Below the pieces are notes generated by a model that did not search any database, had not been told where the DNA came from, and saw only the letters and a program-made list of their open reading frames with translations. Below are positions 1,924-60,019 of a stretch of DNA of 64,000 nucleotides, piece after piece. Positions within the stretch are counted from its first letter, which is position 1. Each line of letters opens with the position of its first letter. A program made the position numbers and the translations under genes. Source of the stretch: Octopus sinensis (taxonomy: Eukaryota); NCBI RefSeq assembly GCF_006345805.1, contig NC_042999.1, positions 170,128,001-170,192,000 of the forward strand, written 5' to 3'.

Positions 1924-2098
1924 CTCTTAACAAAGACATTATTGTGTAGGAAATTCTCAAAGAAGATCTGCATTTGTCTTTCAGACTCTTCAGTTTTATC
2001 AACTTTTTTATCTTTTGGACATTCACAACAGTTTTCATTCAAGGTATCATTAGTTATCGTTTCTCTTTTTTCTTCTTGTTTTGCAATTGGTTTTAACC
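1924..2098 (-). CDS. InR: Insulin-receptor-like exon: insert domain with CCEC motif and alphaCT
   Basis: 175 nt, ttacag|GG...AG|gtattt, phase 1 to 2. Encodes (R)LKPIAKQEEKRETITNDTLNENCCECPKDKKVDKTEESERQMQIFFENFLHNNVFVK(R), matching the IR/IGF1R CCxC and FENFLHNxxFV motifs. Confidence 0.93.
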
Positions 2099-4499: not shown

Positions 4500-4544
<45 letters not shown>

Positions 4545-4548
<4 letters not shown>

Positions 4549-10035: not shown

Positions 10036-10162
10036 ACTTCACGATAATATATAACATAACCAAGCATTTCTCGAGAATCATCCATTTCAAACCTGTTCCA
10101 TTTCAAAATTGCAAATGCTGAAGCAGTTGATATAATAGTGAGGTTCAAATTTTTGGTCTGAC
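10036..10162 (-). CDS. InR: Insulin-receptor-like exon: FnIII-1 N-terminal part
   Basis: 127 nt, attctag|GT...GT|gtgagt, phase 1 to 2. Encodes (C)QTKNLNLTIISTASAFAILKWNRFEMDDSREMLGYVIYYRE(V). Confidence 0.92.
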
Positions 10163-16927: not shown

Positions 16928-17142
16928 AAGGAATAAGATCACCATTCGAGGTAGATATGTCATGCTCTGTATGGTTGGAAGCATTCAATTTGGTATAATT
17001 CATTAGTTCGCGAATTTTGTGTTGGCACAAACGTCTGTTATCATGGAAAAACACCTTGCCTCGCTTTATAACCAGATTCTTTTCTACATCTTTAGAAAAT
17101 AGCTCTTCAATGTTTTCATTATCTCTGAGGTAGAGAGCATAT
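16928..17142 (-). CDS. InR: Insulin-receptor-like exon: L2 C-terminal part
   Basis: 215 nt, ttttcag|A...T|gtaagt, phase 2 to 1. Encodes YALYLRDNENIEELFSKDVEKNLVIKRGKVFFHDNRRLCQHKIRELMNYTKLNASNHTEHDISTSNGDLIP(C). Confidence 0.94.
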
Positions 17143-18064: not shown

Positions 18065-18212
18065 CTATCATCTTCCAGTTTCTTGCCGTGTATAACCTTC
18101 AGGCTTTTGAAAGATGACAAAGATACTAAACCATCTGACCTGGTAATTTTTATGAAATTGTGAACTTCTTCAATTTGCCCAAGATTTGCTTCCAGTTCTT
18201 GAGCAAGAACAC
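18065..18212 (-). CDS. InR: Insulin-receptor-like exon: L2 middle
   Basis: 148 nt, ttttcag|GT...AG|gtagat, phase 1 to 2. Encodes (G)[48 protein letters not shown](R); compare human LAAELEANLGLIEEI. Confidence 0.94.
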
Positions 18213-18673: not shown

Positions 18674-18769
18674 CATTAAGATGTTGTAAAATCAATTCTC
18701 CTGTTATTTCAGTACAATCTTTTAGACTTTGGATAGATGAGATACTCTTCACTTCTTTGGCAGGACATT
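18674..18769 (-). CDS. InR: Insulin-receptor-like exon: L2 start
   Basis: 96 nt, tctgtag|AA...G|gtaatt, phase 1 to 1. Encodes (K)CPAKEVKSISSIQSLKDCTEITGELILQHLN(G). Confidence 0.9.
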
Positions 18770-20121: not shown

Positions 20122-20305
20122 TTTTTGGACATCTGGCTTTGCACTTCAGGCACCTATTTGGATCATCTGGGTTTTCAATATATCCGACAGGGCAATGTTC
20201 GGTACAAAGGGCTGTCCTGTTAGTAGTCATGTTAGCTTCCAATAACTTGAAATTATATGCAACCGATCTACATTCTCTTTCAGTGAGGCAGCGGCGGTTT
20301 TTGAA
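20122..20305 (-). CDS. InR: Insulin-receptor-like exon: furin-like Cys-rich region, part 2
   Basis: 184 nt, gttttag|TTC...A|gttagt, phase 0 to 1. Encodes FKNRRCLTERECRSVAYNFKLLEANMTTNRTALCTEHCPVGYIENPDDPNRCLKCKARCPK. Confidence 0.93.
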
Positions 20306-24184: not shown

Positions 24185-24351
24185 CTTGTAGGTGTTTGGT
24201 GGGCAGGTTCTCTTACACTCCTTGTCATGATAAACATGCCTGCAAGCAAGGCAGTCTCTAGCTGTTGGTCCTCTACAGCCACCAAGGCAATTTTCATGAC
24301 AGCAAGAACCATTCTGCTGGCAATAGCCTTTTCCATTTTCACAAAGGCAAT
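24185..24351 (-). CDS. InR: Insulin-receptor-like exon: furin-like Cys-rich region, part 1
   Basis: 167 nt, atttcag|AT...AAG|gtttgc, phase 1 to 0. Encodes (D)CLCENGKGYCQQNGSCCHENCLGGCRGPTARDCLACRHVYHDKECKRTCPPNTYK, in a different frame from the ORF-track call. Confidence 0.94.
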
Positions 24352-40370: not shown

Positions 40371-40883
40371 CAATATTCTTTTGGCACTCCCTGGAATTCC
40401 AGCAATGGTCACAAGTATGAGGACATTGGTCAACACATTCTCGTGGGTCCTTATTATCAGCAATGGAATGGGCCTCATTTGAACCTTCAGAAGTGATTTT
40501 ACTCCAGTCTATGGTTTCTAAGTAACAAAGGTTGGGACTTTTATTGAAACGAACAGCTCCTCGTTGAATAACAGTTAAGCTGCTCAAACCAATTTCCTCT
40601 AGATCAGGCATTTCAAATGCAACCAGAGCATAATTGTAGAAAAGCTCCTGACCCCGAATAACACTCAAGTTTGGGAAAAGGTCACGTAGAGTTTTAAGTC
40701 CATAGGCACGATACATTATTAAGTAGTCTGTGATTTCAACTAATTTGGGGAAGCGCATGTTTTGATAATCCTCAGGTTTCATGTAATCCAAAAGAATAAT
40801 GCGCAAATACCCTTCTATCACAGAACAATGCTCCAATTGTTTGAAGTTCTCAATTTTGTTTTTTATCTCGATACTTGAACACA
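40371..40883 (-). CDS. InR: Insulin-receptor-like exon: L1 domain and start of the Cys-rich region
   Basis: 513 nt, cttgcag|TG...G|gttcgt, phase 1 to 1, inside ORF 40363..40893. Encodes CSSIEIKN...CSVIEGYL...FPKLVEITDYL...LFPNLSVIRG...NLCYLETIDWS...CWNSRECQKNI. Confidence 0.97.
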
Positions 40884-41472
40884 CTGCAAGCAAGAAAAAA
40901 AAAAGAAAAAAAAAAGAGTTAATATCATTAAAAGTTTAAATGACAATTGTTTAAGGTTTTAATGGAAAATAATATCTGAACTGATAAATAAAGGCCAGCC
41001 AAGCAACTCCATTGTTTTATCAATAAAAAAAATGCATTGTAAGAATTTACAAAGAGACCCTCTCCCCAGCTGCAATAATGGAACAATGTGTGCAATGATA
41101 AACAGATCTTTTTTAGTGTGGGCATATCATTTAATGATAATAATGATTGGAATGAAAGCTGAAATATAGAAGGAACTGTTTCTATTCAAATTATTTTATT
41201 CTACAGACACTTTAGACTTTGTTAGTTTAATTAAGAGAATTTAGTTGAATGAATGTGACATGTTTTCATTACAATTCCGTTGTGTTTATCTGAATACTAA
41301 GATTCCACAGAAGTGAAGTAAAATGATAATGAAAAATTATTGTCAAGCTGTCACAACTTGCAATACGGATGATGTGAAAGTTAATCTAACTTCTCTAATA
41401 AATTATTTTAACATAAATCAAATAAAGACATTTTAACAGCAATTGTAAAACCTGACTGACCAGGCAACTTAC

Positions 41473-41585
41473 ATTCACAAAAATCCATATGAGTTTTGTT
41501 TATTGCAGTTTGCTGTTCACACGATTCTTTTCTTAATAAGCAATCATTTGCATATATTTTATGGTCTGTGCCGCAAATTTGTGAC
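41473..41585 (-). CDS. Kazal half of a follistatin domain, spliceable in frame to L1
   Basis: 113 nt, tttaacag|G...T|gtaagt, phase 2 to 1. Encodes SQICGTDHKIYANDCLLRKESCEQQTAINKTHMDFCE (Kazal motif CGTDxxxYxNxC). Confidence 0.9.
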
Positions 41586-42620
41586 CTGTTAAATAAAAGA
41601 AACGAGATTTAATGTAAACTAAAAATATACAGTGAAACAATTACCTTTCTCCTTTCTTTATAATTTTGCCATGAATGTCTTATTATATTACCTTAATTAG
41701 TTAATGTTTTAATATGGCTGTCTCTCTGCTGTCCAATTAATTACAATGTAAATTTTCATCCCCATCAACAAAACACCAGACCCGGTATGAAAGAGGAAAG
41801 TTGCTTGGCTTGCAAGAGACGGCAGCCAAATCTCTCTAAAATTCTGGTGCGCAGTAAGAAGTTTGCCTGCCAACCACATGGGTTTGGGTTCAGTCCCACT
41901 TGAGTAACTGTCTTCTACTGCTGATCAAAGCATCGTGAATTGATTTGGTAGCCAGAAACTGTAAGAAGCATGTTGTGTGTGTGTATGTGTCTGCCCCTCC
42001 ACAGCTTGACAACCAGTGTTGGTTTGTTTACATCTCCATAACTTAGCAGTGTGGAAAAAGAGTCAGACAGAGTGAGTATCAGACATTAAAAAATATTACT
42101 AGAGTCGATCCATTCAACTAAAACCCTTCAAAACAGTGTCCGAGTGTGGCCAAAGTCTAATGACTGAAACAAGTATAAGATAAAAATTCAATTCCCGATA
42201 CATGAAAAAATAGAACAATTCATGAATTGAACATCTTTGGTTATACAACTACTCAATAAGGGTTGATCTAGGGTCTTAACAACAGCAACAACAACATAGC
42301 AGCTTTCAGTAAGGAATAGAAATTCAAGTCAGATTTGAAGAACATCAAAAAAATTTAACCTAAGAAAAACAAAACCCCTTCCTTATTTCCATGAATCAAA
42401 ACTCTGACTTTCAGAATGAATTACATTATACATCAACAGGCATGGCTGTGTGATAAGAAGTTTACTTTCCAACTACACAGTTCTGGGTTCAGTGCCACTC
42501 AGTGGCACTGGGCAAGCATCTTCTACTATAGCCTTGGGCTGACCAAAGCCTTGTGAGTGGGTTTGATAGATAGATATTTGAAAGAAGCCTGTTGTGTGTA
42601 TATATATGTGTATATATATA

Positions 42621-43179
42621 TAAATAAATAAATAAATAAAACATGCATATATACATACATATATGTACGTACCTACCTCTACATGTATATATGGGTACAG
42701 GACACCAAAAAAACGTCGAACACAATGAGAAACGAAAACATAAACACAAAACCAAGAAAATGGACATTTTTCTTAAACAACGAAAAAATAGAGTACAGGA
42801 CATACAAAACAAGGAAAATTCCCCTTCTTCAGTCGCCTTTGTTTCATCTACTCCACGTTTCGAAGGTCAAGGCAATACATGACTTCAATGAAACTTTCCT
42901 TCCCGCGAAAATCAAATTAAATAAAATTTGAGATTTTTTTGCGGAGGGGTAAAAATGGTAACAAAAACAGGACAGTAACGACAGTACAAAATATAAACAG
43001 TAAAAGACAGGACACGGAGAATAACAGTAACACAAACAAGAAGGGCAGTTAAGCCGAACGAGATAAAATTTTTTACGAACGCTATTTTTTGAGAACGGCG
43101 AGGGAGCAACAATACATGTAGAGGTAGGTACGTACATATATGTATGTATATATGCATGTTTTATTTATTTATTTATTTA
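42621..43179. mobile_element. ~560-bp insert bounded by 68-bp perfect inverted repeats
   Basis: 42621-42688 is the reverse complement of 43112-43179. Element class not established. Confidence 0.7.
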
Positions 43180-43593
43180 TTATATGACGGAACGCACGCA
43201 TCCATTTCTAAGTAAGATTGTTCTATATATATATATAGATAGATATAGATATATATCTTTTTTATTTCTGTATGTGTGTGTCTTGGTATCTGTGTTACCC
43301 ACCCTGTTGCTTGACAACTGATGTTGGTATGTTTACATCCCCATAACTTGTGAAGTTCAGCAAAAGAGACCAATAGAATAAGTACCAGGCTATAAGAATA
43401 TATATGTAAGTACTAGCATCGATTCATTCAACTAAAAATCCTTCAAAGCAGTGCTCCAGCATGGCCACAGCCTAATGACTGAGAAAAGTAAAAGGTAAAT
43501 GATAAAAGTTCTTTAGTGATCTCAATAAGAGATACATATAAACATAAGTAATAACTGCTTCTACTTTGAAAATAATTAAAGGACATTCTAGTT

Positions 43594-44097
43594 CAGGGAT
43601 GGGAAACTTCCACCCGCAAGTCCATTTTATTACACCCACAGGCTGGTATACTCGTATATACGAAATATAGTAAATTTTTCAGTTATGAAATTTATACAAT
43701 ATCTGTATGCCTATTTGCGACATGGGTCGCGTTTCCACTACGACCCAAAACAGACTCGAAGAGAAAATCGTCTGGTAATTACTATTTGATTGGACATTTT
43801 GTTTTCACTCTAAAACCCATATTGCTAGGTTTGTACCACCCTCTTGAGACCCAACTCCAGCTGAAAAATAGAGAATTCCTTATAAGTCATATAAACGCCC
43901 TAAATTCAGTGGCGGCGTTAATGAAGATGTTCAACGTTAATTTAATGTCTTAAACTTATCATTATTAATGTATATCAAATTATACATAGATATATACAAG
44001 ATTTACACAGATATAAGAGTTAGAACTTGTGATCTGCCCGTGGACCCTTTTCTTTGGAAATTTTTGCTCACCGCACTAAAAAGTTTCCCCACCCCTG
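43594..44097. mobile_element. hAT-type MITE (Charlie/Tip100-like ends)
   Basis: TIRs cagggatgggaaactt / aagtttccccacccctg; 8-bp TSD ttctagtt / ctctagtt (7/8 match). Confidence 0.82.
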
Positions 44098-46869
44098 CTC
44101 TAGTTAAACTCTGGAAATATAGGGGCAGATAAAACACCTTGGGGTATTTTAGTTACAGCTTTTCACATTCTTATTTCGAATCCCACCAACACCAAGGATG
44201 TATTTCTTTGCTTCTGAGTCAACAAAAAAAGAAAGAACCAGTTCGGAATAACTGAATTAATTTTCATTATACTCCTTGCCCCTAATTATTTAATTATTAT
44301 TAAATTAATTACAGCACAAATTTTAAACTTCATCAACAGAACTTCACAAGTCAATGAGAGAGAGAGAGAGAGAGGGAGAAAGAGGGAGGTGAGGAGGACA
44401 AGAGAGCAAGCCTCTACAAGGTTGCTGAGCCCACTAGAAATAGCAGCCAAATCTCCCTAAAATCCTATCTTTTACTTGTTTCAGTCACAGGACAGCAGCC
44501 ACGCTGGGGCACTGCACTGAAGGGTTCTAAGTAAACGGTACTTTTTCTGTTTTTTTAAAGTGAGGTACTTATTCTATCTGTCTCTTTTGCTGAAATGCTA
44601 AGTTACAGGGACATACAAACACACACACACACAACAGGTTTCTTTCAGTTTCCCTTTGACAGATCCATTAAGAACACATTAGTCAGCACAGAAGATACCT
44701 GCCGAAGGTGCTGTGTAGTGGGACTGAACCCAAAACCATGTAGTTGCAAAGCAAGTTTCTTAACCACACAATCATGCCTGAGCTTGTGTTTTTTTAATTT
44801 ATTTTATTATCTTTTTTTATAAACAAGAAGGTTGCACAGGACTTGAACCCGTGTTAGAATTCAATATATAAGCTCCAAATGCTTCTTTAGAAAGCGTCTC
44901 AAAGAACAAAACCCTTCTTTCAATTATTTGTATCCTGACCATATTTCCAACATAAAAAAGGGGTGGGGTGGGGGCTGGCCTTTTTATAGTTGCATAATGG
45001 TGGCAGACAAGCATGTGTTATTTATAATCTCTTTTATGGCGTTGTGTGACCTTGAGAGTGAGTCAGAGTAAACAGGCTGAGAAAAAGATTAATTAAGAAA
45101 TGCATTCATTAATAAGAATGTGATAAGAATGGAAGATGCAGACTAAATTCAATCTGTGTCTTGACTGATGACGAACAATTTATAAAGTCTGGCCAAAGAT
45201 TTAGGTTTTAGAACAAGAGATAAAAATTAATCGAAATCATGATAGCATACATTTCCCAAAGTGGCCAATTGCTGGAGAGGTAAAATGCTGAAAAACTGTG
45301 ATTAATGCATTAAGAGGTTGCCTGTCCCACAAGTTATCCAATAATCCTGAATTTTCTTCTCTCCCAGATCATAAATAATGGTTTCATATGTTTGCACAAG
45401 ACCGGCAATTCCAGGGGAGGAGGTAAGTCAATTACACAACCCCGGTGCTCAACTGGTACTTTGCTGATGATTCTGCCAGCTTGCCGCCTTCCACAGATCA
45501 TAAATAATGTCTCATGTTCAGAGCTATACTCTACGTAGTATTTCTAACAACAGTTATCTCTGACTACCATATAAACTCTTCAAACATTCTTAAGTTTCTT
45601 TTGAAACTTTCAAACACAGCTACATTCCTGCCTTTATCAGATCACTTGATTCCCTTTCTAACCAAAGCATCTATCTTATACTTTCATCTCCTGAATGTCT
45701 TTGTACATCAATCAGCCCTAGTGGTCAGATCTATCCAGTTCTATACAACAACTACTTCTAGCTACAGATGTACCCCACCTCTGACCCATCCAAAATAGCA
45801 GGTGACCAATTCCACTCTCATTGGTATTTATTTTCGTCATCATTTCTCACAGACTATAAGGTGGTGCATCTGCAGTTGTTCTGAAGCAGGTGAAGAACAT
45901 TGCTCCACCACCTTTAAGAAATTACCTGCTATCACCATTGAATGTTGTTTACCCACCACCACAACATTCAATTAACCAAAGATGTATTCAATCACAGCAT
46001 GGCCTGCAAATTCTTGTGTCCCCCAGTTTGCAGCCAGGCATTCTGATCCCTTACTAGTCATTTGTACAAACCTTTTCAAAATCTTCCCAACTGCCTTTCC
46101 ACAACTAAGATGACACTGTAAGTGGCAATCCTGCACATAGTGTTACCACATTTACTGCCCAGTTTGTCTTAAGCTCCACACTGTACAACATTCATTTAAA
46201 ATCCAATTCCCCCCCATCGACACACAGCCAGCACCAAAGAGAGTCTCTATGCAGTTACTCATTCAACCTTGAGAAAAAACTAAGAACTAAGTCAAGTCTC
46301 CTGTCAAATCACACACTACTGCCTTAAATAAGAAAACACAGCTATTGTAATCCTAAAGACATCTGCTAAAAAGATGAGGTAGTTACAGCTAGAATGACTT
46401 TGATCATAGGTTAGCTTGATTAAGGTTGACCTAAGACTAAGAGACAAGAATACCAAGATGTCCAGTGTCTTTGCTCTGCTAACCATCAACCTATTCCCCT
46501 TACTTCCAATATCTCAAGGCTAATGGAGACAACCTTAAACAAATCTCTTCACATGCTGAAGATCTAGTCTCTCCTCTGTTACATAACATTGGTCTCTTAT
46601 CCATGGGAACATGGTGGAAAGCAATGTTATCTCAGCATTAACAAAACCTTTGTCTACCGTTGAACCTTCAAGTTCTTCATCTGTCTGTCGTCTCTTCATT
46701 TAAATGTTTCCTGCCAGCTGTACTGTCCCAGTATGTGCAGATGGGGCACTCACAAACCAACATACTATCAACTCTGGAATACTCCATGGTTTGGTAATAT
46801 CCCTCAAGGCATCTCCTTATATACCACATCACTGTGAATTTCCCTCTTTCTTGACAGAGCGGTTAACCG

Positions 46870-47271
46870 GCTTCTGTGCCAGTGGCACTTAAAAGGCACC
46901 ATTCAAGCGTGATTGTTACCAGCGTCGCCTTACTGGCACTTGAGCCTCATGCTAGTAGGGTACTAAGAGCACCATCCAAGCATGATCGTTGCCAGAGCGG
47001 CTGTCTGGCCTCCATGCCGGTGGCATGTGTAAAAGATTTGAGCGAGGTTGTTGCTAATACCGCCTGACTGGCCCCATGCTGGTGGCACATAAAAGCACCC
47101 ACTACACTCTCGGAGTGGTTGGCGTTAGGAAGGGCATCCAGCTGTAGAAACTCTGCCAGATCAAGATTGAAGCCTGGTGCAGCCATCTGGATCACCAGAC
47201 CTCAGTCATTCGTCCAACCCATGACAGCATGGAAAGCAGACGTTAAACGATGATGATGATGATGATGATGA
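46870..47271 (+). mobile_element. RTE 3'-end-derived repeat copy with (GAT)n tail
   Basis: Plus-orientation copy of the consensus ending gttaaacgatgatgatg... Confidence 0.8.
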
Positions 47272-50200
47272 TTAACCTTCCTCCACATCAAGCATGTACT
47301 GCCTTTATGAACCAAGAAGACAAAATCATTCTCCACTGAAAACATGACAATTTAATTCCTACCTACCAATTCAAACGAATTAAATTTAGAGACTTGCAAC
47401 AAATACAAGGCCATACAATCCTTAGTTCCCTTAAGTGTCCCAACTCTTTTTAATGTGTTTTGCTGGGACCACACTCCACACTTAACAATTTATCTAATTC
47501 TATTTTCCCCAGAACCACATCTTTCTGAAGTTTTCTCATTGCCCAGTTTTGTGGGTAGTTTGATTGATGTAGTATTGTTCAGTATTAACTGTTTAATTTG
47601 AACTTCTGTGGATTAACACCTACAGAGTGAGTACCAAACCAGAAAAGTTCAAGCTGAAGAGTTTATCAAGGCACCAATCTCACCTGTCCCAGACACGATT
47701 TTATTTCGACACATGAACTAGTGAAAAACTTGTGCTAAACAATAAATAAGAAGTGAACAAGACAACCAGAAATTGTTTCGTATTTTGTAAGTTGGCATAA
47801 CAAAATATCAACACTTTTGGATAAATCAAATTCAAAATAAGGCTTTGAACAAGAGACATACCAACATTATCTATTTGAAAAGGAATGCTTATGGTTCTAA
47901 AGTAGAAACAGGAGGAAAAAAGGAAGCCAGTTGGAGTGGTTATAAACTCGTAAGGTAACCTTGAAAACAATTGATAATTTATTATAACAATAGGAAGTAA
48001 TACAGTAAATTCACAACCCTTGAAAGAAGGAAATGGTTCTCAAGCATATGAATGAGATCAAGCTGCACCTCTACATAATTATATTAACAGGAAATAATGG
48101 ATTCATATTCAAAATTAATAGTGTTAAAAGTGAAAGGAAATTTAGTCAGAACAGTAAATTCTTTGTATGTGAAGCTGTCCTACATAGTATTACTAACATA
48201 CATTTTGCCTCATTATTTTTAAAAGCTACATATGAAAGAACACAAAATGATTATTTCAGATGTAGTTTATATTTTAATTCTAATTGTATCAGAAAGAGAT
48301 TTTTATGAGATTCTAAACTGAGAGATAATACTTTGTGGCAACAAAAATATGAATAAGGTGCAGCAAAAGAATGCAATACAAAGAATTTATTACAAACTGA
48401 ATGTTAATTTGACAGTGAGAAGAATTAGAAGCAGGTAATTAAATACAAAATATCCCAATGACATGTAATCATGTGGGATTGATTTCAGTCTAGATTCATG
48501 ATGAAAATAAGCTGTATACGACAAGCCACTAGTGGTGACCCACCTGTGTTTCAAATTTCACCCTGGATCCAAACAGTCTTGACAGTTCTCACCAACTATT
48601 CCTCTACACTTAATGTTCTCTGTTTGGTCTTTGCTAAGAATTTTTGGTAGTTATTCTAAATATTCTAATTAAGGCAGTGAGCTGGCAGAATCGTTAGCAG
48701 AATCATTAGCACACTGGATAAACTGCTTAGCGGCATTTTGTTTGTCTTTACATTCTGAGTTCAAATTCTGCCAAGGTTGATTTTACCTTTCGTCCTCATG
48801 GGATCAATAAAATAAATACCAGTTGAGTACAGGAGAGGGGGTCGGGGGGTCGATGTACTTGACTTATCTCCTCCCCAAAAATTATTGGCCTTGTGCCAAA
48901 ATTTGAAATCATTATTATATTATTATTATTATTTTATTTTTTAAAGGATTGGTGTAACTCTTCACAAAGGTAAATAGACAAAACGAAGAGCATGATATGA
49001 AGGGCATCAGACAGATTTCGTCTGACCATGCAATTATAGAAAATCATCATCAGTCATCAACACTTAATGTCTATTTCCATGTTGGCATGGGTTAGATGGT
49101 CTAATAGTAAGTGGCAAGGCCAAGGACCACACCAGGTACCCATAGTTTGTTTTGGTTTGGTTTCAACAGCTGGATGCCCTTCCCAATGCCAACCACTCCA
49201 CAGAGTGGCACTGGGTCCCTTTTACATGGCACCAGCACCAATGCTTTTTATGTGGCACCCACACTAATGCATTTGACATGGCACCTTGGTTTTAGGACCT
49301 CAATTCTGTTGTGGTTGGCAGGTCTTCTCGAGTACAACAAAGCGCTGATGAAGATATATATGGTGGCTGTTCCTTAGTAATGTTGAAGGAGATAAGACCA
49401 TCTTGAGAGATTTTATTTTGCCTGTAGTACGTCTAGAATGAGGTTTCTAAGTTGCACTCAGACAATGTCTGTGGGAATGGTTATCAAAGTTTAAAGGACA
49501 ACCATCTTCAAGTAGTAGAATGAGATGACTGGGGGCAACTGTTTGGACATTGAAGCTGTTTTGATGACAGTACTTTTTAGCACTGGAGGCAAACACACAC
49601 ACACACACATGCAGAAATATACGTATATGAGAGAGAGAGAGAGAACCTTAAAACATATGATGTAAAATCAGTCAGTGTTGAAACAGCAGTGGCAGATAGG
49701 TGGTGTCAAAACAGCTGTGCCAAATGTCTCACACCCTTCCAATAGACCATATAACTCTTTCTCCCTATCAGGATTCATTGTCCATTATTTTCACAACCAC
49801 ATAGTATTCATATCTCTAACATTACTATACAGCATTATATTTCTGAGATGTTTCATTATAAGACAGTTCCTCTCTTTCTCCTACACCATATTATTAAGCT
49901 AAATTCCCAAAATATAAATTCCATAGCATTTAATAATGATAAACAATGCCAAGGCGTACAGTAGAGCTTGGCAGTCTTCTGGCTCACCAGCTTCTGTCAA
50001 ACCATCCAACCCATGCCAGTATGAGAAGCAGATATTAAATGATGATGATTATTGTTTATGGACTGAAGATGCAACATTGCCAATTGAAATTATCTACATT
50101 TTAAAGTTTATGTGCGGCGTCACATAAAAGTGCCAGTGTGGTGTCATGTAAAAGCACCTGTGTGACACTATGTAAAAGCACCAAGCACACTCTGTAAAGT

Positions 50201-51047
50201 GGTTGGCGTTAGGAAGGGCATCCAGTTGTAGAAGCCATGCCAAATCAGACGAGAGTTTGGTACAGCCCACTGCCCTGTTTGCCAGCATGGATAACGGACG
50301 TTAAATAATGATGATGATGAAATTTCTTTCCAGTATAGCATGGGTTTTCATATATTATGCAAAAGAAAAATAATTAAAACTAATTGAAAATATTGTGGGC
50401 ATGTTACTTGTACATGTGGTGGGTGGAAAGCGATTCTACAGGCGGTGGAGAGAAAATGAATGAGGCAAATGTAAAGAAGTCAAAACAGATGTTTGTGAAG
50501 AACAGACTTCACAGTGATTTACAAAGGGCTTGTAAAGAGGATTAACAGCATAGAACATGGCTGCTCAGCAGTTTTGCCCTCTGCAAGTCAGTCAGTATGA
50601 CAAAACAGTTGATGTGAGAATAGTTCCCTGGTTAACGAAGATTAGTGAAATAATGGTAACACAGAGGGAGAAGTAGCGGGGACATTGAATAAGGCTTTAG
50701 GAGTTGTTAGAAACAGGCATAGGCAGATAATATTGTAACTTGATTGTTCTTTTAGTTTTATTGGTTTCAGGCACTGGGGTGTGGCCATGCTAGAGTAATG
50801 CTTTCTCGGATAGAATTGATTACACCAAGACCAGTACTTATTTCCTTGACAATAGAAGGGTGTAAGGCAAAGTCTACCAGGGTGGGGTTTGATATAATCA
50901 AAGGACATAACAAAAAAACAAAAAACAAAACAGAAGGTGTGCTGTTGGATTCTCAATAGATTCTACCATATTCTTGTTAATAAGGAATTTATAAATTAAA
51001 TAAAGAAAAATTTCTATCTTCAGTTAAAATATATGGTAAAAGTTTAC

Positions 51048-51115
51048 TCAATATAAGATATCAGCGTCAGTAAAATAGCCAACGCCCCAATGACGTCACT
51101 TAGTAGTTTATACAT
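51048..51115 (-). CDS. Candidate alternative signal-peptide exon (coding part)
   Basis: ATG at 51115 gives MYKLLSDVIGALAILLTLISYI, then GA|gtaaac (phase 2, compatible with the Kazal exon). Acceptor ttttaacag| at 51170. Confidence 0.6.
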
Positions 51116-52232
51116 CACACAAGCTAGTCATGGTTGGTGCATATTGTGAATGGTGATCACTGATACTTTGCTGTTAAAATAATTGCCTTTATTTCAGATA
51201 AGCAACCTACTAAACACAGCCTTGATTATCAACAGCTCACCATTGTATAGTAGAATGGTTGGTGAAGGAATGGAGGCAATAAAGCTTTTGTTGATAAACA
51301 TGTAATTCATCACAAAGTTAGAAAATGTACCAAAATGTTAAACAGAAATTCTGAGGTCGACTGAGGCAAAGAGTCTTATATGTCAGAGATGTTGGTTAGC
51401 CCCACCCTGGTTGGCCCTGATGGGAGAGACTTATGATCAAAGACATTTGAGGCATGATTATTCAATCGTATTTTAAGGAATCGTGTAACACACTGAACCA
51501 CATTATCCAATGTGCCCTTTAAAGGTGGTGTGATGTGATTTGAGGGAGAATAGACTGCTATTTCTAGCAGGTCATGCAACCACACAAAGGCTCTCTTGTA
51601 GGTTCATGATAAGTGTTAGAGTGTGGATGGGAAAGGGTGCATAATGTTTGGTATTAAGAATAAATTGTCTGCCAATTGCATGAGAGATTCTAATACGAAT
51701 AGAATGATGGATAGATCAGCAAAATGTGATGCCTGACGGAGAACTTAAGTCTGGCAATGCAGAAATTTCTAATTTTGACAGTCAACAATCTTCAATGGAG
51801 TAACTTAATGATTTTACATTTGTGAAGCAAATATGCTGTCTGCCAGAAAAAATAGTTGTGTGTGAGTGAATAAAATATCTTAAAATGGTAACTTATATGG
51901 AGAGAAATATATTTTGTTTTGCTATGTTTGTGGTGATGGCAGGGTAGAACTTGAGCTTCCAATCACCTTGGCCAGTTTTGATAAACCTTTTAGCATTCAG
52001 ATTATCCTGTTAAATGCAATACTTATTTATTCACATTGTTTTAAATTAATCATACATTATCTCGTATCATCAAGATTTTGATGATGAGATTGTTTATTTT
52101 TATAAAACAGAAATATTTGGCTCAGATATTGGAGTTCAAGTGCTAATGGGTTAAGCTGGCTAGTTCAGGACAGACAGCCAACCTCATGTACATTTAACCC
52201 CTTATATATATATAATATATATATTTTATTTA

Positions 52233-52330
52233 AAAGCAGCAGAAATATAACAAAAGCTGTTACTCAAGTGAAACGTGAAACGGAAACGTGAAACTCTGAG
52301 TAACAGCTTTTGTTATATTTCTGCTGCTTT
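52233..52330. repeat. Inverted repeat with 34-bp perfect arms and a 30-bp spacer
   Basis: aaagcagcagaaatataacaaaagctgttactca and its exact reverse complement; the spacer has gaaacg(t) repeats. Confidence 0.9.
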
Positions 52331-52545
52331 AAATAAAGCATATTACTCTACCTCTGGTATTTGAGTACTCTTTTTTCCCCACCTTGTTTCTCATTTATGT
52401 GCTTACTCCGGTATATATATATATATATATATATATTTATTACTTACTCAGAAGGAAAGGCATTACCTATGGCCCTTTTCAGATCCTCTGACAATAATGA
52501 GAGGAAGTTATCTTCAAACTAGAGCCCTAGCCCATGTGTTTGAAA

Positions 52546-52775
52546 CTGAAAGGATTCGACTAAAAGTATTAATAGGCTAAATAATGGTTTCCATACAGGC
52601 AACAGATTACTCTGTCAAATTTAATATTTATATTGTTTTGAATTAATCACGCACTATTACAAAATAGTGCGTGATTAATTCAAAACAATATAAATATTAA
52701 ATTTGACAGAGTAATCTGTTGCCTGTATGGAAACCATTATTTAGCCTATTAATACTTTTAGTCGAATCCTTTCAG
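52546..52775. repeat. Perfect palindrome with 113-bp arms and a 4-nt loop
   Basis: 52546-52658 is the exact reverse complement of 52663-52775; loop acaa. Confidence 0.95.
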
Positions 52776-53919
52776 ATTTTGAGATTTTGATGATGTGATT
52801 GTTTAGTTTCACAATGACGTTGTACGATGGAGGTGAGAGGCTAGATCTGGTCTGTTTCAAAATCAAACAGGTTAAATATTCTGGCCATATATGGCTGGTT
52901 TGAATGCTGAAGGGTTAAGTAGGCCACCCAAAAAAAGGAACAGACCCTTTCGACAGGTTTCCACACAATACTTGCCTGCTAATTTCCACACTTAAGGCTT
53001 TGGACAACTAAGGGTTAAGGGAAAAAATATTTTCCCAAGGTGGAATGCAGTGATATCAAACCCCAAACTACATAAATGCAAAGTAAACTTCTCAACTCAA
53101 CAGCTATGCCTGTGCTACAGAAATTCAACAATGGTTGTTGTAGGCAGTGACTTAATCTGTTGACCAGTTGAACACCTCCACTTCATCTTTAGGTCCAGTC
53201 TGTTACAAGCATTTGGGCCAAGTCACCAGTTTAAATATACCAGCTGCCTTCTGGTTTCAGGGTCCTGGTAAAGGGACATGCTGCCTGAAAAATCATTCAT
53301 CATCCCCTTTCCCATGGTTGCATGGGTTGGGCAGAGTTTATGGAGGCAGATTTTATATGACAAGATGCCCTTCGTCTCACCAAGCACTCACTTGCTTCCA
53401 GGCACAGAAATATTTCCTCAGGGTTGGATATGTTTTTGCAGACCAGTGGGAATGAAGACGCTGCTTCTATAACAAGGACATACACATATGATAGGTTTCT
53501 GTTAGTTTTTACCACCCAAATCTACTCACAAAGCTTTAGTTGGCCCAGGCCTATGCAGAGGGACTGAACCCCAAACAATAAGATCAAGAAGCAAACTTTT
53601 CAACCACACAGTGTCACTTGTGCATATTAGTGTGTGTGTGTGTGTGCACGTCTGTTAGGTTAAAATGACAATTAAGAATGCTTTTGAATGTTCAAAACTA
53701 GAAAAACACTTGAGTGTTGCTTTAAATACAAATAATGAGTGAGTGAGAAAGATTTACAAAAAATATCAATTTCAAACACATTAATATACTAAATGAAATA
53801 AAGGAAAAATATAGTCGTAATTGTTATCAAGAAATTCACTCAAAAAGAGCCTAATTTAAATATACTTGCTATCATACATTCTCAAGGAGTTAGTTAAACT
53901 ATAACATTATTCTACGTAC

Positions 53920-54031
53920 GTAGGTTCATTACTGCAGTCATGTGAACATGTACATCGCTTATCTCCGTTTTCAAATTCTTTGCAGACACCATCAAAGAGG
54001 CAAGATGTTGCAGTGCAAAAAATATCTGGAC
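53920..54031 (-). CDS. FOLN (EGF-like) half of a follistatin domain
   Basis: 112 nt, tttctccag|GT...AC|gtacgt, phase 1 to 2. Encodes PDIFCTATSCLFDGVCKEFENGDKRCTCSHDCSNEP(T), with six Cys in follistatin spacing. Confidence 0.88.
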
Positions 54032-54908
54032 CTGGAGAAATGATAAGAAAAAGACAGATATAAGAATGAACATTAAAGAAAGAAAGAAAAAGAAAAAAAA
54101 AACACCCTGATTTTTGAAATTAAAACAAAATTTGAATAAGAATCGATAAGAGTATCTGGAAGACAACTGGTAGAAATTAGCTGGAAAAGATATTTAAATC
54201 TGATTAAGACTGGTATTTTTCTTTTCTATTTATTTTACAAGGATAAAATTTTTAAACATCATAAAGAAAATGAAAATAAAAACTGGAAAAAAAAATGGAA
54301 AAAAATCAATATAAAGAAAAAGGATCAAAATATCCCTAACAGAACTTACAAAACATGGTAGAACTTTGGAAGATATTTTGGAGTGGGGAGGGGGGTGATT
54401 TCACAACAAAATCACGTGAAATACATCATTTATAGTTGGTATTTATTTTTGTTTATAAGTAAAAAAAAAAAAAAAAGTTGCAGGGAAATTACTCAGCAGC
54501 AAATAAGCAAATAAGCAAGAGTAAAGATTTGAGCTTAAAACTGTGAAATACTGAACCAGATAAACTAAATAATCTCAGTAAGGGGCAGCCTATCATCTAA
54601 ATGTAAGCTACAAAAATATAGTTTATATTAAGGCAAAAAAAAAAAAAAAAAATTATGGTAGTTGTGAAGGGAAGTCCAGGAAGTTTTTTTTTCAGAAATA
54701 AAAGAGAAAGAAATCTTGTCCTTTGAATGAATATTAGTCAAAATAATTTCAATGAGATAAAAGGAAAATTTAAGTTTTTATCTTATATTTTTTACTTGTT
54801 TCAGTCATTGGACTGCAGCCATGCTAGGGCACACCACCTTGAAGGGTTTTAGTTGAACAAATTGACCCCAGCATGCTTTTTTATTTTTAAGTCTAGTATT
54901 TATTCTAC

Positions 54909-55250
54909 GGAGGTGCATGACTCTGTGGGTAGAGCAATGAGCTCATAATTGCAAGGTTGTGAGTTCGATTCCCAAACCGGACTATGTGTTGTGTTCTTGA
55001 GCAAGACACTTTCTTTCACGTTGCTCCAGTTCACTCAGCTGTAGAAATGAGTTGCGACGTCACCAGTGTCAAGCTGTATCAGCATTTGCCTTTCACTTGG
55101 ATAACACTGGTGGCATGGAGAGGGGAGGCCGGTATGCATGGGTGACTGCTGGTCTCCTATAAACAACCTCACCTGAACTTGTGCTTCAGAGGGGAACTTT
55201 CTAGGTGCAATCTCATGGTCATTCGTGACTGAAGGGATCTTTACTCCTTT
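54909..55250 (+). mobile_element. Apparently full-length tRNA-derived SINE with CORE-like segment
   Basis: A box tgactctgtgggtagagc, B box gagttcgattccc, then tgttcttgagcaagacactt. Confidence 0.72.
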
Positions 55251-56696
55251 ATGGGGACATACACAAATTAACACCAGTTGTCAAAGTGGTGAGGGACAAA
55301 CAACAAAACACAAAGACACATACATATGATGGGATTTCTCACAATTTCTGTCAGTGAAATTCACTGACATTAGTTAGCCTGGGGATGTAGCAGAAGACCC
55401 TTGCCTCAGGTGCTGTGTAGTGGGACTGAACCTGAAACAAGGCGGTTGTGAAGCAAGCTTCTTAACCACACAACTGTACCTGAGCCTAGAGGTGAAATTA
55501 TAGAAACATCAATGACCAATGAAGGTGTTTCAAATGCTTTGATGTCCGACTTGGTAACAGGGGAAATCAAACAACAAAGGGAATAAAAAAATATATAATT
55601 AAAATAAAATAAATGAATTCTTTGTTACTATCAACAAAGAAAACTTTACATCATTTGAATCAGTGAAAATAAATAAACTGGTACAGATGAAAGTTCAAAT
55701 AGAAACTGTACTCTTTACTCTCTTTTACTTGTTTCAGTCATTTGACTGTGGCCATGCTGGAGCACCGCCTTTAGTCAAGCAAATCGACCCCAAGACTTAT
55801 TCTTTGTAAGCCTAGTACTTATTTTATTGGTCTCACTTGCCCAAAGTGCCACGCAGTGGAACTGAACCCGGAACAGTGTGGTTCGTGAGCAAGCTACTTA
55901 CCACACAGCCACTTCACAAAAGGATGAAAGGTAAAGTCAACCTCAACAGAATTTGAACTCAGAATGTAAAGATGGATGAAATGCCACTAAGCATTTTACC
56001 AGGCATGTTACCAATTCTGCCAGCTTGCCACTCAATATTGATTCATTATATTAAGGGGTAAAAATTGAACAGAATTTATATCGATTGTCAAAACAAAAAT
56101 AACTTCTGTTATTTATAAAATATATTTCCTAAACAGGATATTAATACGGTTGGTTGGATGGGTTTTGAAAATCTGAATATTTCATGTTACAAAGAGAAAT
56201 TGTTATTCCAACCAAATCATTTTTTGATCACTGTTGACCATTGAACCTGGAAATAGAATGAGGCCAACCTAGCCTCAAAAAGCAAGCTGAGGGGAACAGA
56301 ATGCCATGTTTTGTTTAGATAAACAAAATGTCTGAATTTATGACTGGGAAGTCAATAAATGGTTCAGCACCTTAAATTGACAGCGATTGTGCTTCAGATA
56401 TTAAAATAATATATAAAAAAAGACACAGAAAAAGCTGCTTCTTCGTGGAACAAATCGAAAACATATTTCAAGAATACCTGAGATACTCAATCATTTCATT
56501 CCTTTACTGATTTCATTCTGGGGCACTGCTTATAAGAGTTCTAAGACAATTATATTAAACACATGAGTATTCTGATTTTGATAATCACATGCAAAACAAC
56601 ATTTATACGAATGGATAAAATCTTCAACTCAGAAGACATAGCACAGTATCTAAAGCTAAAGATAGTGAACTTGTATATGTCGATCTTCACAATTTG

Positions 56697-56990
56697 TGCA
56701 GGATAAACTGGAAAGACAGGGTAACAAATGCTGCAGTACGAGACAAGCTGAAAGTCCAAAGACGGCTGGAGTCAAGGATGAAGTCCACAAAGCTATCATA
56801 TTTTGGCCATTCACTGCCCAAGACCATTTTGACAAGAGGCCATCAAAGACATCTGTAAACTGATGACACCAAAGAATGGAGTGGGAACAAGAGCCCTGCT
56901 GACAGTATGCATGCACTACAACACAGAAGGAACTGGAAAGAGTTGGCAAGCCAATCCTGGACACAGGGAGGGCATCTGGCTGATGGTCAG
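56697..56990 (+). mobile_element. RTE-type LINE C-terminal fragment of a second family
   Basis: The plus frame from 56697 reads CRINWKDRVTNAAVRDKL...KLSYFGH, typical of RTE/BovB-like C-termini. Confidence 0.7.
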
Positions 56991-58689: not shown

Positions 58690-58718
58690 CCTGGAAATAA
58701 AAATGAATGGTAAGATAT
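58690..58718 (-). CDS. Candidate 29-nt signal-peptide exon (second part)
   Basis: cattttcag|A TAT CTT ACC ATT CAT TTT TAT TTC CAG G|gtaaga, phase 2 to 1, compatible with the FOLN exon. Confidence 0.45.
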
Positions 58719-58802
58719 CTGAAAATGTTCTTTATCTTTAAATATCAATGAAAACCTTGTGGCAAACAATAGTGAAAATGAAAAAAAAATATGTGTGTGT
58801 AT

Positions 58803-58835
<33 letters not shown>

Positions 58836-60019
58836 AGCATTTGCAACTGAAGCAATGAGAAGCTTGGTGCAATATTGCAACTTTTGTTAGGAAAACAGCA
58901 AGAACAAACACACACAGATATACAACTTATGAGGTCAGAAGTGTAACACACAAAATTGATATGACTTAAGAGTTTATGTTATGGTTATAGAACTGTAATA
59001 GTTTCACAGTATTATCAACAAATATATCAGGAACAAAAAAAGAAAGAAAATCTCATAGGACTGACTAAAATTCAAGATAGAACTGCAATGAAATGATTGC
59101 AGATTTAATTTACCTGTATGTGATAGTCTTATTTAGAATGCAAATCTTCTGGAGAGCATAGGTTCTGGTGTAATAGTAAAATTGTCAGCCCCTATGAAAC
59201 TAAAAGCTTATGCAGCAGTTAGGGACTGATCTTGGTATCAAGCTTCTCAAAAGCTTAGTTATTAGTAGCAGAAATAATCAAATAGTTGGTGCAGTTTCCT
59301 AACTTGATACCATTTAAAATCTACTTGTTAAAATAGCTCATTTCTAAATAATATATAAAACAAAAACCTTAAAACAGTAAGCTGAACAACAATATTCAAA
59401 ACTTACTGAAAGAAAACACTTTCAGGTTTTTAGGTGTGTATTAAATGCTAAAGTTTTATCTTTATTACAGCTATTAAACATTAATTGAATGCCTTAAAAA
59501 CCCAGAGGAAAAACCCTAAATGGTGATTTCCAACTTAGTTTCTAATTATATCACCCTCATCACTTAATGTCTGTTTTTCCATTCTGACATTTGTTTGGAT
59601 GGTTTGACAGGAGCTGACTAGCGAGAGAACTGTGCGGCCAAGTGCCAATGTCTGCTTGGGAAGGGTCTCTGCAGTTGGATGCCTTTCCTAACAGCTTCAC
59701 AGAGTGTATTCGGTGCATTTTACATGGCACTAGCATTAGTGAGGTCACCAAGTAACTCACAAAATAAGACCCCTTAACTGCGGGAGGTGGGTTTATGCCA
59801 AAAGGTAAGAGTTTAAAGTATGGTAGACAGACAGAAATAAATATCTTGCAGTAAAGGAGACATGTAGCTCCCTCAGTTGAAAAAGGAGAGAAGGTGGTGG
59901 TGGCTAAATGTATATTACTCAAATCTCAGCTTTTAGGAATGAAAATCAAATTCAGATCTAACCTTTTTTTAAAAGACTGTCACTACAAATAGTTACCCCA
60001 AATAATACTTTGATTTTAT

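Follow-up and report, generated by a model that had tools for sequence, protein, structure and literature searches.

A follistatin-type module spliced ahead of L1 in the insulin-like peptide receptor of coleoid cephalopods

Full-length mollusc insulin receptor (IR) family proteins whose N-termini we read pass from the signal peptide directly into the first receptor L domain (L1), and in other animals the phase-1 acceptor of the L1 exon is used straight after the signal-peptide exon. In vertebrate INSR, an alternative cassette of 12 residues lies at the C-terminal end of alphaCT, and insects have secreted IR-like decoys such as Drosophila SDR. In follistatin-type (FS) proteins the FOLN hairpin is a binding surface, and the wrapping of activin by follistatin requires the N-domain plus FS1-FS2. 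Here we describe a 64,000-nucleotide stretch of octopus DNA (the window). [quoted passage not shown] When spliced, 13 window exons give a translation that, by protein comparison, exactly equals residues 38-788 of CAI9720558.1 (1482 aa). The features, all on the − strand, are as follows.

53920..54031, −: FS-b exon A, the N-terminal (FOLN/EGF-like hairpin) half; 112 nt, phase 1 in, 2 out
41586..53919, −: phase-2 intron splitting FS-b; 12,334 nt
41473..41585, −: FS-b exon B, the Kazal-like half; 113 nt, phase 2 in, 1 out
40884..41472, −: phase-1 intron from FS-b to L1; 589 nt, joined in octopus RNA contig L006
40371..40883, −: L1 exon C; 513 nt, (L)CSSIEIKNK...CQKNI, Recep_L_domain E 1.2e-25
24185..24351, −: cysteine-rich (furin-like) region exon 1; Furin-like E 1.2e-25, exact chain
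20122..20305, −: cysteine-rich region exon 2; Pfam, exact chain
18674..18769, −: L2 domain exon; Recep_L_domain E 2e-22, exact chain
18065..18212, −: L2 domain exon; Pfam, exact chain
16928..17142, −: exon spanning the last part of L2 plus the L2-FnIII-1 linker; exact chain
10036..10162, −: FnIII-1 exon; exact to CAI9720558.1
8962..9015, −: FnIII-1 exon; exact to CAI9720558.1
5515..5693, −: FnIII-1 exon; exact to CAI9720558.1
2257..2427, −: FnIII-2 exon; Pfam fn3, exact to CAI9720558.1
1924..2098, −: insert-domain exon with an alphaCT-like helix (...QMQIFFENFLHNNVFVKR); reaches residue 788/1482

The exon at 1924..2098 is the final coding exon within the window, and the transmembrane segment and kinase exons lie past position 1. 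The receptor gene in Argonauta is ~152 kb long. In a sequence search, the best match to the L1 exon was a full-length cephalopod IR.

Exons A, B and C are each preceded by a polypyrimidine tract and an AG acceptor, and are followed by the donors GTACGT, GTAAGT and GTTCGT. Exon A runs from phase 1 to 2, exon B from 2 to 1, and exon C enters in phase 1, confirming on the − strand the splice sites and phases (1-2, 2-1, phase-1 L1) proposed in a first-pass annotation. The exon A peptide is (G)PDIFCTATSCLFDGVCKEFENGDKRCTCSHDCSNEPT and that of exon B is (T)SQICGTDHKIYANDCLLRKESCEQQTAINKTHMDFCE, which holds a conserved N-glycosylation sequon, NKT. Joined with exon C, they encode a 10-cysteine FS module and then L1, in a translation that matches the earlier annotation's peptide exactly. 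Because FS-b ends ...FCE and L1 starts LCSS, just two residues lie between the final cysteine of FS-b and the opening one of L1. The 12,334-nt intron between exons A and B contains SINE-like repeats, and a search of it for a further FS exon found none.

No chance similarity is involved: the spliced window peptide matches residues 38-283 at 100% identity in XP_029633035.1 (O. sinensis) and in CAI9720558.1 (O. vulgaris), and is also found at 100% in O. vulgaris CAI9720557, bearing out the earlier claim of an insulin-receptor-family gene with an FS (FOLN+Kazal) domain spliced in frame onto L1. The exon A peptide is 84% identical to Argonauta residues 46-83 and 100% to residues 38-75 of O. sinensis X2; for exon B the values are 92% and 100%. 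Full-length receptors with FS before L1 are recorded for O. vulgaris (CAI9720557/8), O. sinensis (XP_029633034/5), O. bimaculoides (XP_014780880/XP_052822679) and Argonauta hians (GAB1600284.1). The module also lies upstream of L1 in RACE-cloned cDNAs from Sepiella japonica (QHI00146) and Sepia latimanus (QHI00149), cuttlefish receptors that come from a cloning study (PMC9654127). At the RNA level, L006, a 5,013-nt contig from SRR3401912 (described in PMC11662614 as an octopus meta-transcriptome), has one uninterrupted 1480-codon ORF. It carries both predicted junctions, 53920>41585 and 41473>40883, at the exact nucleotides (AATGAACCTAC joined to ATCACAAG, and GATTTTTGTGAAT to TGTGTTCAAG). In addition, 21 cuttlefish RNA contigs of 5.3-5.6 kb contain the FS module. 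RNA support is from cuttlefish and an octopus other than O. vulgaris, and same-species support is from gene models. All the records and transcripts recovered encode the entire receptor, transmembrane segment and tyrosine kinase (PK_Tyr) included.

A PDB sequence search aligned the whole FS-b module with FS repeats from agrin (E 6.6e-30) and with FS1 of follistatin (E 8e-11). In Pfam, the spliced window peptide matched Kazal_2 (30.2 bits, cut-off 22.8), Kazal_1 (27.7, cut-off 21) and Recep_L_domain (90 bits), and some coleoid IR records already bear precomputed Kazal_2 matches. The Pfam FOLN model gave no match. In a cuttlefish isoform with FS-b only, Pfam returned no Kazal match at E<=0.01. 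The cysteine spacing is of the FS type (..1,3,8,10,6,13) as opposed to canonical Kazal (7,7,10,2,17), and a PROSITE-like Kazal signature fails in all four modules checked. Judged from sequence, FS-b and a second module, FS-a, both appear to have non-inhibitory FS-type spacing, and both are strongly acidic (net charge -6 and -8).

FS-a lies upstream of FS-b, beyond the window, and had been overlooked in the first-pass annotation. Over 4,557 nt, cuttlefish contigs L007 and L014 differ only by an exact 213-nt phase-1 insert, which is FS-a; the cassette is included in some cuttlefish transcripts and skipped in others. The O. sinensis RefSeq isoforms X1 and X2 likewise differ by 72 aa corresponding to FS-a. 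This alternative splicing, seen in cuttlefish transcripts and O. sinensis isoform models, points to regulated use, and inclusion or skipping would give the receptor two isoforms, in loose analogy with IR-A/IR-B of vertebrates. The chain order is signal peptide, optional FS-a cassette, FS-b, then L1-CR-L2-FnIII and on to the transmembrane segment and kinase.

Between octopus and cuttlefish, FS-b is 53% identical; its 10 cysteines are all retained, as is the position-66 sequon, and invariant residues are concentrated in the FOLN hairpin (SC.FDGVC..ENGD..C.C). Comparing the window with octopus cDNA gave dN/dS values, each based on few substitutions, of 0.68 for FS-b and 0.29 for L1. FS-b thus appears to be evolving faster than L1, suggesting modest constraint outside the cysteines and leaving room for a mainly structural or spacer role. 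A single-sequence AlphaFold2 run gave a pLDDT of 31; when an alignment of 67 rows was supplied, the score was 85-92 from L1 onward and 27-57 for FS-b, yielding no usable geometry.

Among 310 IR-family proteins, an FS HMM matched 22/22 cephalopod and 0/288 other sequences, and within this set the FS+L1 architecture is confined to coleoid cephalopods (octopods and cuttlefish). In three further invertebrate IR loci, the 10 kb preceding L1 contained no FS exon. FS-b occurs in every cephalopod ILPR retrieved and so seems to belong constitutively to the extracellular alpha-subunit. We infer that exon shuffling placed FS modules into the ancient phase-1 intron between the signal-peptide and L1 exons. 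This origin, which the first-pass annotation had also put forward, accords with the module's phase 1-1 structure and with the lack of any such module in the non-cephalopod IRs examined. The insertion probably dates to the coleoid ancestor or earlier, an age bounded only by octopods and cuttlefish, since Nautilus and squid receptors are absent from the databases. The architecture is less novel than was supposed in the first-pass annotation, which named wide existing annotation as grounds for refutation. It is public and automatically annotated, and it occurs in every coleoid IR record retrieved, whether from RefSeq, from ENA/DDBJ gene models or from the two cloned cDNAs. Full-text literature searches found no description of an FS-L1 receptor architecture, and the module goes unmentioned in the one paper on a cephalopod receptor (PMC9654127).

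Overall, we place at roughly 85% the probability that FS-b is a module of the coleoid ILPR ectodomain that was shuffled in, and we grade its function separately. Two other readings of the locus were considered. The FS exons could be a small separate gene nested in receptor intron 1, with exon B terminal and read through to ...ECKLPGQSGFTIAVKMSLFDLC*, and gene-prediction pipelines could have wrongly merged the two genes. Reading through the exon B donor does reach a stop after 22 codons, the AT-rich 589-nt intron has an AATAAA, and several supporting records were produced by automatic gene prediction. However, exon B has a perfect GTAAGT donor, the two RACE-cloned cuttlefish cDNAs and more than 20 octopus and cuttlefish RNA contigs run uninterrupted from signal peptide through FS and L1 to kinase, and no FS-only transcript was found among the records retrieved; we regard this reading as effectively refuted. 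Highly improbable, too, is a secreted decoy in which FS and the ligand-binding ectodomain, free of the kinase, trap insulin-like peptides, an alternative the first-pass annotation had raised. The window stops short of the transmembrane and kinase exons and SDR offers an insect precedent, but the window exons correspond to residues 38-788 of a 1482-aa protein that has a transmembrane segment and a PK_Tyr kinase, and every cephalopod cDNA and contig recovered is full length.

With FS-b placed in a full-length receptor, we speculate, tentatively, that it may be a non-inhibitory, glycosylated accessory module that tunes insulin-like peptide binding or selectivity, or recruits a partner. FS-b would be rigidly seated on the L1 N-terminal cap, next to the first rung of that domain (I-E-I-K-N in the window), which we take to be equivalent to human M-D12-I-R14-N15, a contributor to insulin site 1. 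From there it would modulate peptide binding or selectivity, or bring in a partner. The whole basis of the ligand-tuning proposal is position in the chain and what is known of vertebrate IR site 1. A somewhat unlikely alternative is that the receptor tolerates the FS modules as passengers, which would form a stable N-terminal cap rich in disulfides, bind nothing specific and be kept for the sake of folding or secretion. The higher dN/dS of FS-b, its octopus-cuttlefish identity of just 53% and the accretion of SRCR domains in clam receptor models, which suggests that the site readily accepts modules, would fit such a role; survival of the cysteines, sequon and hairpin residue block across the octopod-cuttlefish split, and the alternative splicing of FS-a, argue against it. 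We consider it improbable that the modules act as a second input, binding TGF-beta-family ligands (activin/myostatin/BMP-like), matrix or heparan sulfate and coupling them to insulin-type signalling, along the lines proposed in the first-pass annotation. Homology to the FS domains of follistatin and agrin is clear and the invariant residues gather in the hairpin used for binding elsewhere, but follistatin wraps activin with several domains where the receptor has 1-2 isolated modules, and these acidic modules are without the basic heparin-binding hairpin of follistatin FS1. Tethered Kazal-type serine-protease inhibitors, guarding for example the alpha-subunit or ligands, are very improbable. 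Kazal_1 and Kazal_2 scores exceed threshold, and the cuttlefish FS-a loop C-S-L-E-V-M-R-V-C is ovomucoid-like; set against this are the FS-type spacing, the failed Kazal signature, a putative P1 that is Asn in FS-b and falls within an N-F-T glycosylation sequon in cuttlefish, and a loop that differs between octopus and cuttlefish.

Our preferred reading, an FS module within the receptor ectodomain, can be set beside several known systems. The cephalopod receptor shares with canonical IR/IGF1R (Lymnaea MIPR, Mytilus/Pomacea ILPR, human INSR) the order L1-CR-L2-FnIII x3 and a single transmembrane segment, as well as an alphaCT-like helix (FENFLHNNVFV), a tyrosine kinase with DIYETDYYR, and a phase-1 acceptor directly before the first L1 cysteine. 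It differs in that 1-2 FS modules are inserted ahead of L1, where all 288 non-cephalopod IR-family sequences examined have none. The cephalopod modules resemble those of follistatin, agrin, FSTL3 and SPARC in having 10 FS-spaced cysteines, a Kazal-like subdomain that accompanies an EGF-like hairpin, and module boundaries in phase 1-1. Unlike them, the cephalopod module is joined to the ectodomain of a receptor tyrosine kinase, has an acidic instead of a basic character, and occurs in 1-2 copies instead of a multi-domain array that wraps TGF-beta ligands. The INSR exon 11 cassette of vertebrate IR-A/IR-B is similar in that a small alpha-subunit cassette gives two full-length isoforms, whereas FS-a is a whole 71-72-residue domain at the N-terminus. 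IGFBP7 and invertebrate insulin-binding proteins (IB + Kazal + Ig) also bring a Kazal-type domain into the insulin/IGF system; they are secreted binders, the cephalopod protein is a receptor, and Pfam detected neither IGFBP (IB) nor Ig domains in it. A parallel in position is seen in clam ILPR models (Ruditapes philippinarum P0192; P0101), where extra cysteine-rich modules adjoin L1 N-terminally in an otherwise complete receptor. There the module consists of three SRCR domains, arose in another lineage and is known from gene models alone, and its place directly N-terminal of L1 suggests the same insertion site as that of the cephalopod FS module.

Three exons on the minus strand of the window encode a follistatin-type (FS) module, designated FS-b, spliced in frame onto the L1 domain of an insulin-receptor-family gene.

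Exons encoding FS-b and L1
54031-53920, minus strand: FS-b exon A, 112 nt; polypyrimidine tract and AG in front, donor GTACGT, phase 1 to 2
41585-41473, minus strand: FS-b exon B, 113 nt; polypyrimidine tract and AG in front, donor GTAAGT, phase 2 to 1
40883-40371, minus strand: L1 exon; donor GTTCGT, entered in phase 1

The first-pass annotation had proposed these exons on the basis of proper splice sites and compatible phases, and the AG acceptors, GT donors and phases (1 to 2, 2 to 1, then 1 onward) bear this out. The introns measure 12,334 nt (A to B) and 589 nt (B to L1), and the spliced translation of the three exons reads (G)PDIFCTATSCLFDGVCKEFENGDKRCTCSHDCSNEPT/SQICGTDHKIYANDCLLRKESCEQQTAINKTHMDFCE/LCSSIEIKNK..., with slashes at the junctions. 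In the spliced window exons, Pfam matched Kazal_2 (30.2 bits, cut-off 22.8), Kazal_1 (27.7 bits, cut-off 21), Recep_L_domain (90 bits; E 1.2e-25 and 2e-22), Furin-like (E 1.2e-25) and fn3. The expected order of Kazal then Recep_L_domain was thus recovered, but FOLN, which had also been expected, gave no Pfam match in the spliced window peptide. The hairpin half of FS-b reached only EGF_4 at E 0.05 in Pfam; in phmmer, alignments to follistatin FS1 and to the FS repeats of agrin begin at residue 4-8 of the module and run on from there. In a PDB sequence search all 74 residues aligned to agrin FS repeats (E 6.6e-30) and to follistatin FS1 (E 8e-11). The cysteine spacing is 4,5,9,1,3,8,10,6,13, the boundaries are symmetric (phase 1 in, phase 1 out, a shuffling-competent unit), and just two residues separate the last FS-b cysteine from the first L1 cysteine. 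The spliced peptide, Pfam, the PDB sequence matches and the FS-type cysteine spacing all agree with the predicted 10-Cys FS module directly before L1, and the modules in this receptor are bona fide follistatin-type domains.

The splice is real by three independent lines: a cloned cDNA, octopus RNA and cuttlefish RNA. The Sepiella japonica cDNA was obtained by RT-PCR and RACE (PMC9654127), and its protein reads ...NMDCCK/LCPSIVIKN..., with two FS modules ahead of L1. A published siRNA/primer, GCAAGT/TATGTCCGAGTATT (PMC9654127), spans the Sepiella FS-b/L1 junction exactly and reads C-K/L-C-P-S-I, while the 5'-RACE primers lie inside FS-a, the second and more upstream module, at the GAVCK and VCASNG positions. 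The octopus RNA is a 5,013-nt Logan contig (L006) with a single uninterrupted 1480-codon ORF, from run SRR3401912, described as an octopus meta-transcriptome (PMC11662614). It contains AATGAACCTAC/ATCACAAG and GATTTTTGTGAAT/TGTGTTCAAG, the same nucleotides as both predicted junctions, placing the proposed joins of 53920 to 41585 and 41473 to 40883 in RNA from a meta-transcriptome as opposed to O. vulgaris reads. A further 21 cuttlefish RNA contigs of 5.3-5.6 kb carry signal, FS, L1 and on to the kinase within one ORF. No Kazal exon was found in the 650 nt upstream of L1 that a genomic contig (L001) covers, a stretch too short to be informative; exact matches to the Sepiella qPCR primers mark this contig as cuttlefish.

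Because cDNA, octopus RNA and cuttlefish RNA all join FS to L1, a nested separate FS gene, in which exon B is read through its donor to a stop 22 codons on, is ruled out for practical purposes. The idea that the locus might encode a decoy receptor also fell away, as the matching proteins and RNA contigs are all full length with a transmembrane segment and kinase; a secreted decoy of the Drosophila SDR type, which has neither, was rejected on the same grounds.

The minus strand of the window holds thirteen coding exons in the Pfam order L1, furin-like Cys-rich, L2, FnIII and an insert-domain exon (2098-1924), which ends ...QMQIFFENFLHNNVFVKR (also ...FFENFLHNNVFVKR) and is colinear with annotated receptors. 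This ending resembles human alphaCT (TFEDYLHNVVFV). With the L1 exon as query, HMMER run exhaustively against 1.84 billion cluster representatives gave one outstanding match (377 bits), GAB1600284.1, 'insulin-like peptide receptor isoform X2 [Argonauta hians]', a protein of 1492 aa laid out as signal peptide, FS module (46-120), L1 from residue 121, transmembrane segment and tyrosine kinase. A search with GAB1600284.1 gave O. vulgaris CAI9720557.1 and CAI9720558.1, O. sinensis XP_029633034.1 (X1) and XP_029633035.1 (X2), O. bimaculoides XP_014780880.1 and XP_052822679.1, Sepiella japonica QHI00146.1, Sepia latimanus QHI00149.1 and many Logan contigs. The spliced window peptide matches the O. 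vulgaris records and O. sinensis X2 at 100% identity, and a brute-force splice chain over AG/GT sites showed that the window exons reproduce residues 38-788 of CAI9720558.1 (1482 aa) exactly; these matches identify the window as the 5' half of the canonical O. vulgaris/sinensis insulin-like peptide receptor (ILPR) gene. The gene spans ~152 kb in Argonauta, and here the first 13 in-window exons occupy >52 kb.

The kinase lies outside the window. In O. sinensis X1, which shares a 90%-identity cluster with CAI9720558.1, PK_Tyr_Ser-Thr matches at E 5.7e-94, and the activation loop DIYETDYYR (YxxxYY) can be read in the Argonauta orthologue. No signal-peptide or FS-a exon was found in 54032-64000, so both lie beyond the window. 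The two O. vulgaris records differ only at the extreme N-terminus (MSSNVTIEVTSHKEKVSVVRQR... in CAI9720557.1 versus MLAISKKRRLFYFL... in CAI9720558.1), neither first exon being in the window, and the difference reflects either an alternative first exon or a mis-modelled one. The window gene is a bona fide insulin-receptor-family member with one departure from the norm, the FS modules before L1: an alpha-chain start at L1 is typical of the family, though not strictly defining, and here each of the 22 cephalopod sequences has one or two FS modules ahead of L1.

The receptor introns contain a dispersed SINE-like repeat of ~200-240 nt, with at least 12 copies at 72-92% identity, all inside introns of this gene. 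The repeat accounts for the recurring '...LDALPNANHSESVVGAF...' pseudo-ORFs. Neither a tRNA (ARAGORN) nor an Rfam family was found in the window. Three ORF fragments picked out by eye may resemble mariner-type transposase (…SPDLAPSDYHLF…) and LINE reverse-transcriptase tails (…RLRWYGHVARM…), an unconfirmed likeness; none of the three had a Pfam match at E<=0.01.

Repeats and transposon-like ORF fragments in the window
4544-4766, 5786-5969, 8710-8902, 13496-13733, 29077-29257, both orientations: SINE-like repeat copies
33756-33955, 35078-35218, 46801-47300, 49043-49237, 50173-50247, both orientations: further SINE-like repeat copies
3898-4191, 15522-15923, 6305-6571, minus strand: transposon-like ORF fragments

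The FS-a module (71-72 aa, 10 Cys, spacing 5,5,4,1,3,10,10,6,11) sits between the signal peptide and FS-b, with which it shares only 29% identity, and it too matches FS domains of agrin and follistatin. O. sinensis X1 (1554 aa) has FS-a, as do the cuttlefish cDNAs and both O. bimaculoides models; FS-b stands alone in Argonauta, O. sinensis X2, the octopus RNA contig and the O. vulgaris models. FS-b itself occurs in 22/22 cephalopod sequences. Two cuttlefish RNA contigs from one run series, L007 and L014, which represent a short (1518 aa) and a long (1589 aa) form, are identical over 4,557 nt save an exact 213-nt insert that begins in phase 1 and equals FS-a. FS-a is thus an alternatively spliced phase 1-1 cassette, and the O. 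sinensis RefSeq isoforms X1 and X2 likewise differ by it.

An HMM of the two cephalopod modules, FS-a and FS-b, matched every one of the 22 cephalopod sequences and 0/288 of the other insulin receptor (IR) family sequences collected, which include full-length receptors from gastropods, bivalves, a chiton, a nemertean, arthropods, echinoderms, a hemichordate and vertebrates. At three other invertebrate IR loci (L003-L005), the 10 kb preceding L1 contained no FS exon; one 10-residue look-alike at these loci was dismissed as low-complexity chance. In non-cephalopod molluscs the signal peptide runs straight into the C-x-x-[IL]-D-[IV]-R-N start of L1, and the same phase-1 acceptor opens the L1 exon in cuttlefish genomic DNA. 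The simplest reading is that phase 1-1 FS modules would have been shuffled into an older phase-1 intron between the signal and L1 exons. The phase 1-1 modules and their absence from all 288 non-cephalopod sequences support the exon-shuffling origin suggested in the first-pass annotation. The insertion would date to no later than the octopod-cuttlefish common ancestor, a bound set by the octopod and cuttlefish receptors sampled. Two clam ILPR gene models, P0192 (Ruditapes philippinarum, 1806 aa) and P0101 (1805 aa), have three SRCR domains directly N-terminal of L1 (about residues 49-349) in otherwise complete receptors, and are known as gene models alone. This looks like independent module accretion at the same site, a hint that modules are taken up there repeatedly.

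Public records already contain the architecture, in some cases with a precomputed Pfam Kazal_2 match, and it is therefore not a new sequence. Its apparent unfamiliarity thus held only in part: it is present in public gene models and cDNAs, but full-text literature searching turned up no account of an insulin receptor with a Kazal/follistatin architecture. The one paper on a cephalopod receptor names transmembrane, L, furin, FN3 and kinase domains and leaves the FS modules unmentioned (PMC9654127). In that work on Sepiella japonica ILPR, a 'second transmembrane domain' at aa 27-49 is left unexplained, and L1 is put at aa 220 without comment on the roughly 170 residues between (PMC9654127). The aa 27-49 segment is the signal peptide or anchor, and the roughly 170 residues are FS-a plus FS-b. 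A 2025 survey of insulin receptor evolution sampled zero mollusc receptors. We rate the FS-L1 receptor as annotated but undescribed. The cuttlefish isoform with FS-b only (P0303) has no Pfam Kazal match at E<=0.01, and Kazal is likewise missing from the precomputed Pfam lists of O. vulgaris and the octopus RNA contig, both of which clearly carry the module. Since Pfam misses Kazal in some receptors, database domain-architecture searches undercount this architecture.

Between octopus and cuttlefish all ten FS-b cysteines are kept at an overall identity of 53%, along with an N-glycosylation sequon at position 66 (NKT in octopus, NQT in cuttlefish) and an N-terminal hairpin block, SC.FDGVC..ENGD..C.C. 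A comparison of two octopods, resting on few substitutions, gives dN/dS of 0.68 in FS-b against 0.29 in L1; FS-b is kept yet less constrained than L1. The modeling of FS-L1 that had been suggested came to no usable structural conclusion: AlphaFold2 gave pLDDT 31 for FS-b plus L1 alone, and with a 67-sequence alignment it was confident from L1 onward with FS-b at pLDDT 27-57. A PROSITE-like Kazal pattern matches ovomucoid third domain but neither FS-a nor FS-b, whether from octopus or from cuttlefish. The P1-equivalent residue of FS-b is Asn, which in cuttlefish lies inside an NFT sequon. The FS-type spacing and the Asn at P1 make a protease-inhibitor role unlikely, and we rejected a canonical Kazal serine-protease inhibitor on the spacing, the unmatched signature and the putative P1 Asn. 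As a separate observation, the cuttlefish FS-a loop (P0179, residues ~82-95) reads C-S-L-E-V-M-R-V-C-A-S-N-G, with Leu at the P1-equivalent position, resembling the ovomucoid third domain reactive-site loop C-T-L-E-Y-R-P-L-C-G-S-D-N. The octopus FS-a loop is longer and different, so this resemblance is not conserved.

How the modules act can be framed by where they sit. FS-b is shown to be a segment of the alpha-subunit, on the extracellular side, in a receptor that is full length and bears a kinase. In vertebrate receptors the first L1 rung (human Asp12, Arg14, Asn15; here I-E-I-K-N) contributes to insulin site 1, and therefore a domain fixed on the L1 N-terminal cap could alter ligand access or add contacts. 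We speculate that FS-b may serve as an accessory module, either tuning the binding of insulin-like peptides or the choice among them, or recruiting a partner, and that FS-a inclusion would yield two receptor isoforms; we tentatively give this reading a probability of about 0.3. Its main rival, only slightly less plausible to us, is that the modules are largely structural passengers. Coupling to TGF-beta-family ligands or matrix through the FS modules, as the first-pass annotation proposed, is possible but unsupported, and we consider it the least probable of these roles. Scarcely more probable is a two-input receptor, in which FS-b and the alternatively spliced FS-a would bind something besides insulin-like peptides, for instance a dedicated partner, a matrix component or a TGF-beta-family ligand, or else would switch insulin-like peptide selectivity. 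If the two-input reading is true, one receptor tyrosine kinase would integrate two growth-control systems, and isoform choice would set the wiring. For a new mechanism there is no evidence yet, and the sequences are already public.

Few animal signaling receptors are as conserved as those for insulin/IGF, whose ligand-binding head normally starts the mature chain. One apparently constitutive and one optional FS domain have been kept on the coleoid receptor head since before the octopus-cuttlefish split, a clean, datable case of exon shuffling into a conserved phase-1 intron and a natural experiment in how far an extra domain can be tolerated, or put to use, at the insulin-binding site. Should the modules shift ligand selectivity or bring in another ligand, growth and reproductive control would have undergone a lineage-specific rewiring in coleoids, animals noted for growing fast and dying after they breed once; should they have no specific effect, this is ordinary domain accretion. 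The value lies in drawing attention to a feature that has been overlooked but is open to experiment, together with an alternative-splicing switch that had gone unnoticed, not in a new gene. Compared with known systems, IGFBP7-type proteins have IB followed by Kazal and Ig, whereas the cephalopod receptor is without IB or Ig, Pfam giving no IGFBP or Ig match in the spliced peptide or in full-length cephalopod receptors. The FS modules are acidic (net charge -6 and -8), in contrast to the basic heparin-binding hairpin in follistatin FS1.
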